NCBI GenBank assembly: GCA_021613535.1
Contig: CP075496.1
Coordinates: forward strand, 5,642,001-5,706,000
DNA from: Adineta vaga
Taxonomy: Eukaryota > Animalia > Rotifera
Reading direction: 5' to 3'
Length of the DNA stretch: 64,000 nucleotides
The notes under the pieces were generated by a model. It worked only from the letters and a program-made list of their open reading frames with translations. It searched no databases and had not been told where the DNA came from. Positions 10,991 through 22,787 of this stretch are shown here, piece after piece. Position numbers and translations under genes: made by a program. Numbering within the stretch: the first letter of the stretch is position 1; each line of letters begins with the position of its first letter.

Positions 10991-13900
10991 TCAAGAGATA
11001 CAGGAATTCAATTGAATACTTTGATCCGGACAGTAACAAGCATATGGTGGTTGACTAGCAGGATTGGAAAAACAATAACCTGGCGAACAGTTAATTGTGC
11101 AAGACGCTAAATAACAGAAATGTATAAATCGATTATTGAAGAAAAGGAAAAATGTTATTTTAAATTTACCTGGTCGAATATCTGTATCACATATTCTTCC
11201 AGTAAAACCGGGAGGACATGAGCAACTAAAACCGCCAGTACCAGCATTAGTACATGTACCGGAATTTAAACATGGATTACTATCACATGTTACTATTAAA
11301 AGAAGAAAAGAAAGAAAAAAGAAATCATTTTTAAAAATGAGAATACTATTGCCATTAGTACTTACAATAGTTCGTAGTTCCTGTTTCACATCTTTGTCCT
11401 TTGTATGGATATGGACATTTACAAGTATATGTTAGTAATCCTTCAACACATGTACCACCATTCCAACAAGGTTGCGACACACATCGTCCCGCTAGTTAAG
11501 AAAAACAAAGAATTGAATGCAAAATAATAATGATCGAACAAAAAAACTACAACATACATGAAAGTGTTTCACAAAATTGACCAGTATAACCATTCGTACA
11601 AGCACATTTATATGAATTTCCAGCTAGAGTACAACTTTGAACAATAAGAAAGAAAAGTAGAATCTTAAATTTTACTAAAAAATATCTTACACGCCACCAT
11701 TCAAACAAACCGAGGGATTATTAAAACAACTTGTTGCTAGAAAATAAATATAAATTCTCTCCAAATATAAAAACAAATAAAATATTCATGCTATTTTACC
11801 AGTTGCCATTGTTTCACAACTCAATCCTGTATATCCTGGCAAACAGTTACAAGTGAATGCATCTATTGCCACAGGTACACATCTAAAATCTTGGAGATTC
11901 ATATAATCTATTAAAACTAATAACTTTTCTTACGTTCCACCATTCTTGCATGCATTTGAAAGTGAACTGCAAATACCATTACCTACTCATATACAAGAAA
12001 TTTTCAATTTTTCAATCTTGAATATTGTTCGATTGTAACCTGAAATCAATTGTTCACAAGTTGATCCTGTATACGGCGGTGAACAGACACAAAATAGAGC
12101 ACGATTCAATAATATGCAACTGAAATAAATACATCAAAAATAAAGAATAGAAAAACGTGATATTATCCATTTATTTACGTTCCACCATTTTTGCAATAAT
12201 TTGGATTACCAGCGCATGTATTAGCAACTAGAAAACAAAAGGAAATTTACAAATTTTCTCCTAAGAATCAATTCATTATCTTTGACAAACTACCATTCAT
12301 GTTTGTTTCACATTGTCTTCCTGTATATGGATATGAACAAGAGCAAGCATGTGTTGATCCATCAAGATAACAACTAAATTCAATCGATCGATAGAAACAT
12401 TCTATACGGATTCATCTATATAACGTACGTGCCACCATTCAAACAAAAATTACTAATACTACAGGGAGCTATAATAACAGAAATACAATAATTAATAAGA
12501 TAGATGCATGAATAAGATTTCAATTACATGATGTGATTTTGTCGCAAAGTGGTCCTTCAGTTCCTGGTCTACAAATACATCGTATACTGGTTGCATTTGA
12601 AACACATCTTTGGAAGAAAAGTTCAATTAGAAAAGAATAACAATCTTCTGTTTATGAATAATCAATATATACGTGCTTCCTTGTTTACATAAACCAGGAT
12701 TCAAATTACAGAGTGAATTTGATGATGAAACTATATAGAAATCAAATACAATGGTGAAGATCGATTGAATCTTGAAAAAATCTATATTACTTTGTTGTTC
12801 ACATCGAACTCCGGTAAAATCAGGTTGGCATGAACATTGTAATGAAGTACCAGTTGATACACAACTATAAATGTGTGAACATCTTCAAAATAGATTTTAA
12901 TCAGTTAAAAAACTTACGCTCCACCATTTAGACATGGAACGGCAAGACAATTTCCTGTAAATATATTACTTTTCTCAGAGGAAATTGAAACCGATAATCA
13001 AAATTTACATACCACTTACAACATTTGCACAAGTTTGTCCTTGAAATCCGAATGAACAGTGACATTCAAAACTATTTCCAACATTCATACAACTAAACGC
13101 GATAACACCCAAAATACTTCTAGAAAAAAATTCTTCTTCTATACGTACGTGCCACCATTTTGACATGGTGATGATGAACAAGGTGTTACTAAAACAAGAA
13201 TATAAAATCTCTTGCTCTTGAACTAACTTCTGCTTCATTCATTTCATACTATTCGAAGAAAACTGACATTGAGTACCAGAAAATTGTTGTTTACAATGGC
13301 ATAAAAACGATGCTCCGGCTGGTGTACAACTGCCATTGTTATGACAAGGAAAACTTGCACAGGCATTTGATTGACCTTCAAATAGCAGAAAACGAAGTTT
13401 ACCTATGCTAAATATCTATTGATATCTTACCAATAGGTATTTCACAATATTGACCGGAAAATGTACCTGGACAAGCACATCTTAATCGATTTAATGAATA
13501 ATCAAATGTGCATTGTCCATTATTTTTACAATAATCGACTGGACAAGTTGTTACCATTGTCGCTAAAACAAGATTTTATTTTCTTGTTACGAAAACATGA
13601 TCTAATAAACTTTTTTTTTAATTTATAACATACTACATGACGGGTCTGTATATTCGAGTGGACATTGACAATAATAATTTGCATTATTATTATAAGATAT
13701 GCATGTTGCACCATTTTTACACGGCATTGTTGAACAAATTGCTAATCAAAATGTTTAAAAGTAAAAAATAATGATTAAAATAGTGATTAAATATACTTGA
13801 CATTTGACTTAAAGTTTCGCAATATATTCCACTATATGACGATGAACATTGACATCGAAAAGCACCACTAACACCTGGAATACAAGTACCACCATTTCGA

Positions 13901-14494
13901 CAAACTTCTGCTTGATAATAACATCGATTTGCATCTAACAAAAGAGATAAAAACAGTTTTTTTTTCAAGAAGGAAAAATTGAAAAGTTCTCTTATCTTAC
14001 GTTCACATCGTGTTCCGTAATACATTGAACTACATGAACATGTATATGTGTTCGAAAATTGTGAAACAGTACATATACCATTATTCATGCATGGATTTGA
14101 TGCACATGGTGATGGTGTCATTGTAATAGCTATTTAATGAAAATTTGTGTATTAAGAATAGATAAAAGTAAAACATTTTTTTAAACAAACATGGTGATGT
14201 TGTTGTTGATATAGTTAATTGATCACATCTTTTCCCACCAACTGGAAGATGAGATGGACATATGCAATAAAAGTCTGTATTGCCAGAAAGTGCAAGGCAT
14301 TGTCCACCATTCACACACGGATTTGGAGAACAAACTAGATACGAATAAATAAATGAGTAGTTTCTTGATTTGATTGTTTCAATTTCTGACAAAAATATAG
14401 ACTATTCAAATGATTACATACTATTTTGCTGTCCAACAACGACAGATGCTATCCCAAAGATAGCGAAAGCAAGTAGCAGAAATTTGTACTTCAT
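10991..14494 (-). CDS. Secreted protein made of ~15-16 tandem EGF-like repeats (many small exons)
   Basis: ATG 14494 with signal peptide [20 protein letters not shown]; repeated C-x-x-x-P-C-x-N-G-G-x-C...C-x-C-x-x-x-Y/F-x-G-x-x-C units; ends ...[10 protein letters not shown] with no TM segment seen. Confidence 0.88.
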
Positions 14495-20387: not shown

Positions 20388-20969
20388 ATGGAACAATCAT
20401 CGGAAAATACTGTACAAAAATAATATGATCTTGCAGCATTGTGGGACAAGCATTGCGAATATGAATTTAGTATACGTGATGTTGCTGCAACTATGGCTTC
20501 AGATCCTTATGTTAATAATATTCCAACAATGACTGGTGGTGTTGGTGTTGAAGAATTGACACGTTTTTATAAACATCATTTTATTAATAGTAATCCAGAA
20601 GATACACAACCTATTCGAATTTCAAGTGTAGATGGTACCGATCGTACAGTCGATGAAATATTGTTCTGTTTTACTCATGATCGTGAAATCGATTGGATGT
20701 TACGTGGTATTGCACCAGGTGGTAAACCTGTAAAAATTCCATTTGTTGCTATCGTTACATTTCGTGATGGTAAACTTTGTCATGGACGTATTTATTGGGA
20801 TCAAGCTTCGGTATTAATACAAATTGGTCTATTGGATGGTACGAACTTACCGATTGCTGGAATTGAAACAGCTAACAAATTACTCGATAAAAATTTTCTG
20901 TCGAATACTTTAATGAAACGTTGTACTGAAAGTGCAAATAGAAGCCAAATAAAAGATCATACATTTTAA
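20388..20969 (+). pseudogene. SnoaL-like ester cyclase / dienelactone-hydrolase C-terminal domain, bacterial/fungal type, intronless, disrupted
   Basis: DLAALWDKHCEYEF..RDV, PYVNNIPTMTGGVG, FTHDREIDWML, IYWDQASVLIQIGLLD motifs; ATG 20388 is followed by in-frame TAA at 20421-20423; conserved HEHIY reads HGRIY and ATMATM is shortened to ATM. Confidence 0.75.
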
Positions 20970-21124
20970 TCAAATCTTTTTCAGGCATCAATCGAATTTA
21001 CTTTTTTTAATTGTTATTTTACAAAAGAACTTATTTATTAAAATCTTTTTATGATAATAAAATCTAATCTAATCTACAGACAAACTTTAGAAGAAAGAAA
21101 AACGAAAGTTCAGATTCAGTTAAT

Positions 21125-22787
21125 TCAATCGATGTTGAATCTTTGAACTCGATGATTGCCATGTTCAACAACATAGAAATTGCCGTATCGATCGAAAGAT
21201 AAACCAACAGGACGATGTAATCGTTTCAATTCATTGCCTGTATTGTTTCCACCAACAACCACATTTCCATGTGTTTCTCCTTTGCGCCATTGCATAACTC
21301 GATGATTCCATTGATCTACCACATAAACCGTGCCGGATTGATCAACGACGACACCTTCGGGATATGATAATTGTCTCGAACTATTCCCTTCACCTTGACC
21401 ACCAGCTACAATTATACCTTCTTTAGCGCCTAATATCCATTCCATCACACGATGATTCTTCCAATCTGATACGTAAATAGAATAATTTTGATCGATGTAT
21501 ATGTATCTTGGTTCATTAAATTGATCAAGACGATCACCTTTTCCATTGACACCAGCTACCACAGTCGTTTGCACATCACCTATTTGCCATCGTTGAATAT
21601 TATTTCGTACTTGATCAGTAACATAGAGAAATCCACGATCATCCATTGTTAATCCTATGTAACCACCATTTGAGAGGAGAATTCGTCCAATTGTACCTTT
21701 ATGCAGATCCCATCGAACTACTCGTTGGTTGCCATAGTCGCAGATGATGATACTATTACTTTTTTCGTCAACAATAACATCAGTTGGGCTATTCAATTGA
21801 TCTAATCGGTCTCCAGCTCCATTTCCACCAGCGACTACTCGACCATTTCTAGCACCATAATCCCATGCAATTATACGATGATTCTGATTATCAGCAATAT
21901 AAATAGTTTGGTTATTATCAACGAATAAACCGTATGGATAGTAGATTTGATTCATTGAATCACCTGCATAATTTCCACCACCTACGATTGTACCTTGTTG
22001 TGACCAAACTGTATCAGCACTAATGAAAGCGCTACGAAGTGGTGCTACAATGAAATAAAAATCCATAATAACTATTGAACTCAAATCAATCTAATTGAAA
22101 CTATACCTCGCTCGATTTTCATGATATTTGTACAAGGACAAGGATATTCCCGTCGTATCATGATGAATGTAAAAATAGATAGAGATAAAATAAATGCAAT
22201 TAAGATCATTTCACGAGTATTCCATGATTTCTTGAAAACTGAAGCCAAACATGAATATCGACAAGACGATTTCTTGGTGTTGTTAGTTAATGTTTCACGT
22301 TCAATATCAACATTTTTTAAATTAGCGGAAAAAAACGAAAGCGATGTTGGATTAATTGTTTCAGGATATGTTTCTGAAATGCTTCAAAAGTTAAAAAGAA
22401 ACATGAATTTATACATTTTGACATACTAGATATTGTAAAAAGATCACTTTTCTCATTGACTTGTTGATGTTCTATAAAGATAAAGATAAATTTGCATTGA
22501 TTTGATATTGTATTTGAAATAAATTTACCTAGAAGTTTTCTTGCAACATCATGACAGCCTATTTTTTTTATTAGTTCAATAAGATAAGAATAATTTTGAT
22601 CAGTAATAATTGCTTTGTTGAAAAGAAATTCGATCAAATAAAATGTTCCAAGTGGTGTAGGATCATCCCATAAATATTTCGGAACATCTTGGACAAGAAG
22701 ATTAGCAAGTTGTTGTCGATCGTCTTTCGAAAGATGATGCATAATTTTGACCAATTCATGTCGAAAAATATATTGTTGGTAATTCAT
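21125..22787 (-). CDS. Death-effector-domain / transmembrane / NHL beta-propeller protein (~496 aa); exons 22787-22529, 22471-22427, 22373-22107, 22044-21125
   Basis: DED-like N-terminus (FRHELVKIMHHLSKDDRQQLANLL...IITDQNYSYLIELIKKIGCHDVARKL), hydrophobic MILIAFILSLSIFTFIMI, six NHL repeats (YYPYGLFVD, LNSPTDVIVD, FNEPRYIYID, LSYPEGVVVD, LHRPVGLSFD); three phase-1 GT-AG introns give one open frame of 1491 nt. Confidence 0.85.

Follow-up and report, generated by a model that had tools for sequence, protein, structure and literature searches.

The window analysed here is a 64,000-nucleotide stretch of the genome of the bdelloid rotifer Adineta vaga (contig C4, 5642001-5706000; the genome comprises 100.8 Mb in six contigs, with about 30% GC). 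Features are given in window positions. The minus strand of the window carries, at 22787-21125, an intact, spliced gene that joins a death effector domain (DED), a linker, one transmembrane (TM) helix, and an NHL propeller. We read the product as a single-pass protein of about 496 residues with a likely cytosolic DED and a likely exoplasmic propeller, one of a family of about 47 members that would signal by clustering of their DEDs, and we put the probability of this reading at roughly 0.6. In its architecture, the gene departs in a new way from known death-fold receptor signalling, and the arrangement has been sitting unremarked in databases.

The four exons of the gene form one frame-consistent model in three-frame translation, and the length of the product follows by arithmetic from the exon lengths. 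Domain searches and structure models were run exon by exon, each exon apart. The gene is built as follows:

22787-22529, minus strand: exon 1, 259 nucleotides (nt), with the start codon at 22787; DED-like domain, residues 1-86 and the first base of codon 87.
22528-22472, minus strand: intron 1, 57 nt, GT..AG, phase 1 by frame analysis; a phase-1 intron lies at the same position in the A. vaga paralogue P0154.
22471-22427, minus strand: exon 2, 45 nt, part of the linker; 22427-22455 is present in the spliced contig of run X4, and the equivalent exon is included in the A. ricciae model P0001.
22426-22374, minus strand: intron 2, 53 nt, GT..AG, phase 1; skipped exactly by the run X4 contig.
22373-22107, minus strand: exon 3, 267 nt; linker, TM helix at 22209-22156 (residues ~157-174), and juxtamembrane CPC motif (residues ~180-182).
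22106-22045, minus strand: intron 3, 62 nt, GT..AG, phase 1; homologous in position and phase in P0154 and A. ricciae P0001.
22044-21125, minus strand: exon 4, 920 nt including the stop codon at 21127-21125; six-bladed NHL beta-propeller.
21031-21124, minus strand: probable 3' untranslated region, with AATAAA at 21039-21034; a contig of run X3 spans 21031-21185 across the stop codon.

Runs X3 and X4 are Logan contigs that we guess to be derived from RNA. The run X4 contig (record 11) joins 22226-22373 to 22427-22455; the 53 nt of intron 2 are absent, and their ends read CT..AC on the plus strand. Because the contig skips exactly intron 2, we take the locus to be transcribed and exon 2 to be joined to the TM exon by splicing. 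The annotated A. vaga paralogue P0154 (GenBank UJR16632.1), which maps residue for residue onto locus L032, has the same exon plan of a DED (85 residues), a segment of 31 residues, a TM exon (about 90 residues), and an NHL exon (307 residues). Its introns of 48-64 nt are homologous in position to those of the window gene, and those adjoining the DED exon and the NHL exon are in phase 1.

The best match of the NHL exon is the A. ricciae protein P0001 (73% identity), a prediction that joins the equivalents of exon 2, the TM exon, and the NHL exon. At the corresponding A. ricciae locus, L031, the order of DED exon, exon 2, TM exon, and NHL exon is preserved; the DED exon there is intact, has the same start codon, and is 51% identical to the window DED. 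The public model P0001 (L031:4001-4300, CAJNOJ010000596.1) begins at this start codon, yet splices most of the intact DED exon out, which explains why the DED is missing from the A. ricciae database protein. Similar mis-models may conceal other members of the family. The flanks of the window gene and of L031 share no collinear neighbours, and the orthology of the two genes therefore rests on mutual best similarity. A word-based protein search with the NHL exon returned no A. vaga entry for the window gene. The preliminary description of this DNA, which had assembled one four-exon gene in the order DED, TM, NHL at the same coordinates, is borne out by the frame-consistent GT..AG introns, the exon plan of P0154, and the A. 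ricciae gene.

The N-terminal domain is a true death fold, the nearest relatives of which by both sequence and structure are DEDs. Exon 1 matches the Pfam DED profile (PF01335) over positions 1-77 of 82, with an E-value of 1.1e-5 and 25.5-26 bits. The translated exons of the window gene, its A. ricciae relative, and 42 A. vaga paralogues (44 sequences, alignment A1) were aligned without difficulty. PF01335 is matched by 40 of them at E <= 0.01, with a best E-value of 9.4e-12, and no other family recurs. When the family profile was compared with the PDB, the best match was caspase-8 DED1 (E 2.9e-4), followed by other DED chains. The AlphaFold2 (AF2) model of the window DED, computed on A1, is a six-helix bundle (helices 3-16, 21-30, 37-40, 45-57, 67-75, and 79-85) with a predicted local distance difference test score (pLDDT) of 90.1. 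DEDs of FADD, caspase-8, cFLIP, vFLIP, and PEA-15 make up nearly all of its top 25 Foldseek matches (TM-scores of 0.6-0.77, root-mean-square deviations of ~2-3 Å); the FADD DED 9l5w reaches TM-scores of 0.73/0.77, and Pyrin and death domains rank below the DEDs. The profile and structure checks that had been proposed for this domain thus agree on a DED-type death fold.

The C-terminal domain, encoded by exon 4, contains six repeats of the Pfam NHL family (PF01436, E 1.9e-32). Its AF2 model has 24 strands arranged in six blades (pLDDT 93.7), confirming the propeller described earlier. The propeller model retrieves NHL propellers in Foldseek with E-values down to 6e-20, among them Pizza6, Thin, TRIM2, TRIM71, and the extracellular NHL domain of PknD (1rwi), as well as a teneurin-like protein. 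Among natural proteins, Thin, TRIM2, and TRIM71 match best, through their NHL domains. Since the receptor kinase PknD has an extracellular NHL sensor, a propeller of this kind can serve as an ectodomain.

The TM segment MILIAFILSLSIFTFIMI is encoded by exon 3 at 22209-22156, exactly where it had been placed before, and is flanked by KKSWNTRE and RREYPCPC. Its Kyte-Doolittle mean over 19 residues is 2.45. The N-terminus of the protein, MNYQQYIFRHELVK..., has no hydrophobic character, so a signal peptide is absent, again as described earlier. A TM-like segment follows 260-700 nt after the DED start in 39 of the 46 paralogues, compared with 3-8 of 46 at control offsets and 10 of 46 on the antisense strand. 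The charge of the 15 residues before the TM segment was compared with that of the 12 residues after it: the N-terminal flank is the more positive one in 28 of 40 members, equal in four, and less positive in eight (mean difference +1.75), and the flanks of the window gene carry +2 and +1, respectively. A type II topology, as the preliminary description had it, is plausible, and we infer that the DED is most likely cytosolic and the propeller exoplasmic. A cytosolic N-terminus is argued for by the long folded N-terminal domain without a signal peptide, and an exoplasmic head fits the lectin-type heads of many paralogues. The CPC motif, which the preliminary description had placed in a stalk and considered for disulphide oligomerisation, was rejected as a family feature: the A. 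ricciae protein reads PGTYAYK, and CPC is found in the juxtamembrane flank of no paralogue. We do not consider the motif functional.

The DED exon has 47 matches in the A. vaga genome at E <= 0.01, and 4 kb around each of the 46 other DED exons were examined for TM and head exons. The window gene displays the plan of the family, with DED, short linker, TM, and head exons on one strand within ~1.7 kb, separated by phase-1 introns. Clustering of the next long open frame gave the following heads in A. vaga:

NHL: 11 loci and the window gene.
TPR: 10 loci.
Jacalin-like lectin: 9 loci.
DM9: 3 loci.
Mannanase galactose-binding-like: 1 locus.
ResIII/DEAD helicase, without a TM segment: 1 locus.

The number of DED exons, the recurrence of the TM segment, and the several head types support the earlier proposal of an expanded receptor-like family with swapped heads. 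Four family members lie in tandem on C4 at 11113022-11128738 (16 kb), and pairs are found on C2 at 15160987-15163386 and on C3 at 4531927-4535263; these clusters suggest local duplication.

A profile search of 1.84 billion representative proteins gave only 268 matches at E <= 0.001. Among 20 clusters that were looked up, those with a named source are all bdelloid (Adineta vaga, A. ricciae, A. steineri, Rotaria species, and Didymodactylos carnosus). Most of the database members carry the label 'unnamed protein product' or 'DED domain-containing protein'. They combine the DED with NHL, jacalin, RicinB and jacalin, DM9, GH16, or TPR domains in Adineta, Rotaria, and Didymodactylos, and the DED and NHL domains occur in one predicted chain in five species. 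One TM-like segment, around residues 120-235, is present in 33 of the 53 database proteins of at least 200 residues. Further architectures are seen in the database proteins P0125 (A. steineri), P0245 (Didymodactylos carnosus), and P0241 (A. ricciae): DED-TM-GH16 (glucan-recognition-like), DED with RicinB and jacalin, and a 1565-residue model containing a DED, NHL, an ADP-ribosyltransferase domain, and TPR, which was probably merged from neighbouring genes. The DED-TM-head architecture is therefore real and old within Bdelloidea, and it is present, uncharacterised, in public databases. In the open-access literature, we found no paper that names Adineta together with the DED and none that describes a DED-TM-NHL protein.

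We propose that the linker of ~70 residues and the single TM helix tie the N-terminal DED to the C-terminal six-bladed propeller, so that the head would bind an extracellular or lumenal ligand and clustering would gather the cytosolic DEDs, which would then signal through homotypic death-fold contacts. In most members, the same cassette of DED, short exon, and TM exon is fused to interchangeable heads (NHL, jacalin, DM9, ricin-B, GH16, galactose-binding-like, and TPR). The members of the family would thus be candidates for pattern-recognition or death-fold receptors able to dispense with a separate adaptor of the FADD type.

Several observations weigh against this reading; they concern the DED of this copy, the gene model, the location of the propeller, and the downstream partners, and are set out here with the alternatives to which they belong. 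Between A. vaga and A. ricciae, the ratio of nonsynonymous to synonymous substitution (dN/dS) is 0.81 for the DED exon (78 codons) and 0.81 for the linker/TM exon, against 0.21 for the propeller (304 codons), which is under purifying selection. In this ratio, the near-neutral DED differs significantly from the propeller (Fisher p 5e-4). A diversifying propeller, as suggested in the preliminary description, is not supported for this gene, the fast-changing parts of which are the DED and the linker.

In helix 2, the window DED has an asparagine, N29, in a column occupied by phenylalanine in 41 of the 44 family DEDs. In this column, caspase-8 DED1 and DED2 align with their KF and an F122A mutant chain with its alanine, and N29 thus takes the position of the FADD F25 hydrophobic patch, a critical DED-DED contact surface (review, PMC4558505). 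The phenylalanine of the exposed helix-2 patch that is typified by FADD F25 and caspase-8 F122 is missing from the window DED. So is the E/D-RxDL charge triad of helix 6, where the family reads C-x-D-A/V: Cys78 is found in 40 and Asp80 in 32 of the 44 DEDs, and the cysteine aligns with the arginine of the caspase-8 RLD. The mean identity to the other DEDs is 0.36 for the window DED and 0.32 for its A. ricciae relative, compared with a median of 0.50, which places both among the most divergent of the 44. The A. ricciae relative retains the patch phenylalanine (YF), so it was lost recently and only in A. vaga. The window DED keeps the residues L19, R24, G47, L55, I61, L69, I70, I76, and C78 of the fold core. 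Judged by its sequence, this copy is a fast-evolving, divergent outlier of the family with an altered DED interface. The frame is open in both species, and the pattern in the DED looks like fast surface change rather than decay. With asparagine at the patch position in a DED whose core is retained, this copy may signal differently or weakly, or may act as a modulator.

It is conceivable that the protein is made as described, but that this copy is non-signalling or modulatory (a decoy, an inhibitor, or a filament capper), having kept its propeller for the ligand and lost its DED interface. The replacement of the patch phenylalanine, the contrast in dN/dS between the DED and linker/TM exons and the propeller, and the divergence of the window and A. 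ricciae DEDs all point in this direction. Nevertheless, the loss of the phenylalanine is recent and confined to A. vaga, the fold core is retained in a confidently modelled DED, the frame of 86 codons has stayed open in both species in a 30% GC genome, and partners could still bind other surfaces of the DED. We consider this alternative unlikely, though by no means far-fetched. A complex prediction of the window DED with the canonical family DED of L056 scored 0.00; it was run without controls and carries no weight either way.

The gene model has its own weak points. Of the three junctions for which cDNA confirmation had been proposed earlier, junction 2 is confirmed by the spliced contig; no contig covered junction 1 or junction 3, and the support for these two is therefore comparative. 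Intron 3 contains an in-frame ATG from which a product with the NHL part alone might in theory be translated. The window DED scores below the Pfam gathering cut-off (26 compared with 35.9 bits), a cut-off that is exceeded by seven DED exons in the genome, four of them within the list of 47. If the fusion were an artefact of hand splicing, with the DED/TM and NHL exons in separate transcription units, or if the locus were a decaying pseudogene, then the uncovered junctions, the ATG in intron 3, the A. ricciae annotation that splices most of the DED exon away, and the nearly neutral evolution of the DED would be accounted for. This is very improbable, since the four exons are all open with compatible phases, a transcript contig shows junction 2 spliced, P0154 is annotated with the same plan of exons, predicted proteins of five species hold DED and NHL in a single chain, the order DED, TM, NHL is repeated at 11 further A. 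vaga loci, and apart from these exons nothing upstream belongs to the NHL exon.

As for the location of the propeller, it is 55-58% identical to the propellers of bdelloid B-box/coiled-coil proteins, which are TRIM-like and presumably cytosolic, and counts of N-glycosylation sequons, of which the window propeller has four, and of cysteines do not separate the TM-linked from the B-box/coiled-coil-linked bdelloid propellers. Ten paralogues have TPR heads. TPR domains are unusual outside the cytosol, and TPR heads fit lumenal proteins, such as those with SEL1L-type repeats, better than surface sensors. The family might act on internal membranes or outside immunity, as a lumenal glycan or cargo sensor of the endoplasmic reticulum, Golgi, or endosome, or as a cell-contact or developmental receptor. 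Besides the TPR heads, the purifying rather than diversifying selection on the propeller would suit such a role. Immune receptor families are usually large, tandemly clustered, and lineage-specific; the DED-TM-head family is all three, and many of its heads (jacalin, DM9, ricin-B, and GH16/glucan-binding) belong to the classic recognition repertoire of invertebrates, which speaks against such a role. In an RNA-seq preprint on Rotiferophthora infection of A. vaga and A. ricciae (bioRxiv 10.1101/2021.09.04.458992), the words 'NHL' and 'lectin' occur nowhere and the immune-candidate passages do not name the family, a point in favour of a role outside immunity. On balance, we find the internal-membrane or non-immune role distinctly improbable and retain the reading of a receptor with an exoplasmic propeller and a cytosolic DED.

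No effector was found joined to this type of DED: none of the 66 longer database members contains a caspase (Peptidase_C14), death domain (DD), CARD, TIR, or kinase domain. Rotifers have been reported to be without a DED-containing caspase-8 (PMC12066828). Together with the replacement of the patch phenylalanine by asparagine, this makes the direct recruitment of DED partners by this copy, which the preliminary description had envisaged, doubtful. We speculate, as a rather unlikely extension of the receptor reading, that bdelloids run a death-fold system of their own that is independent of caspase-8, in which ~50 type II receptors with a DED of their own would nucleate DED assemblies upon ligand binding, without a FADD-type adaptor, and divergent copies, such as this one with its conserved propeller and lost patch phenylalanine, would cap or tune these assemblies in the manner of cFLIP.

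Three DED exons above the Pfam cut-off lie outside the list of the TM family: a tandem pair on C5 at 14943583-14943840 and 14944051-14944284 (plus strand), and one on C2 at 2299804-2300055 (minus strand). The two C5 exons are located just upstream of a DED-helicase gene, and all three are candidate soluble DED adaptors or partners. Peptidase_C14 (caspase) exons are located on C3 at 3843317-3844029 (minus strand), ~1.5 kb downstream of the DED-TM-TPR gene L043 and on the same strand; the two may be one gene or neighbours.

The six-helix death fold is common to the window DED and to FADD, caspase-8, cFLIP, and PEA-15 (PF01335), which provide its best sequence and structure matches, and the helix-2 phenylalanine patch of the extrinsic-apoptosis DED proteins is conserved in most bdelloid members. 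The known DED proteins are soluble adaptors, proteases, and regulators; here, the DED forms the tail of a predicted membrane protein. The bdelloid DEDs differ further in the replacement of the E/D-RxDL arginine by cysteine in 40 of 44 members and, in this copy, of the patch phenylalanine by asparagine. Unlike that of caspase-8, the bdelloid type of DED has no caspase domain attached to it in the 66 database members.

The likeness to the death receptors of the TNFR family (Fas, TNFR1, and DR4/5) is one of working principle only, in that a single-pass protein with a cytosolic death fold would assemble a complex upon clustering. The TNFR members combine a signal peptide and type I topology with cysteine-rich ectodomains, and their death domain engages DED proteins by way of FADD, whereas the window protein has no signal peptide, an NHL propeller as its head, and an N-terminal DED of its own. 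Pfam searches detected neither a TNFR nor a Death domain in any of its exons. PknD of M. tuberculosis (1rwi) has the layout proposed for the window protein: its N-terminal signalling domain is cytosolic, a single TM helix follows, and the C-terminal NHL propeller lies outside. The PknD sensor is among the structural matches of the window propeller. However, PknD comes from a bacterium and signals through a Ser/Thr kinase instead of a death fold, and common descent of the whole architecture is not implied.

TRIM-NHL proteins (Brat, Thin, TRIM2/3/71, and LIN-41) and the other bdelloid NHL proteins, which carry a B-box and a coiled coil, have a propeller of the same type. The window gene lacks the RING, B-box, and coiled coil; by Pfam, the DED is the only domain upstream of its NHL exon. 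With a DED and a TM helix in place of these domains, the propeller is unlikely to be cytosolic or to bind RNA.

Death-fold expansions are reportedly present in amphioxus. RIG-I-like receptors of Lingula carry an N-terminal DED (PMC8998645). Invertebrate sensors of this kind share with the bdelloid family the lineage-specific grafting of a DED onto recognition modules. RIG-I-like receptors are soluble cytosolic sensors, whereas in the bdelloid family a TM helix separates the DED from the head. The A. vaga locus L064 (L064:301-2086; C5:14947760-14949545, plus strand) contains a DED exon followed directly by a 443-residue frame with ResIII/DEAD helicase domains, without a TM segment. Its predicted domains resemble those of a RIG-I-like receptor in which a DED stands in for the CARDs, as in Lingula (PMC8998645).

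Two further open frames were recognised in the window. A single 176-residue frame at 20439-20969 (plus strand) adjoins the 3' end of the gene and encodes a SnoaL-like polyketide cyclase domain (E 1.2e-6). The domain is typical of bacteria and fungi, and the frame was therefore possibly acquired horizontally. A frame at 13717-14121 (minus strand) contains EGF-like repeats (E 1e-11) and is presumably an exon of a larger gene.

Death-fold signalling proceeds from a receptor with a death domain through the adaptor FADD to a DED-caspase. If our reading is true, receptors that hold a DED immediately behind the membrane would wire this pathway differently, linking the DED to lectin and propeller heads in an animal that reportedly has no DED-caspase-8. 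The copy in the window is a natural variant of the DED interface and could reveal which of its surfaces matters. Bdelloid rotifers are long-standing asexuals, and for the question of how they withstand pathogens the ~47 lineage-specific candidate receptors provide concrete genes.

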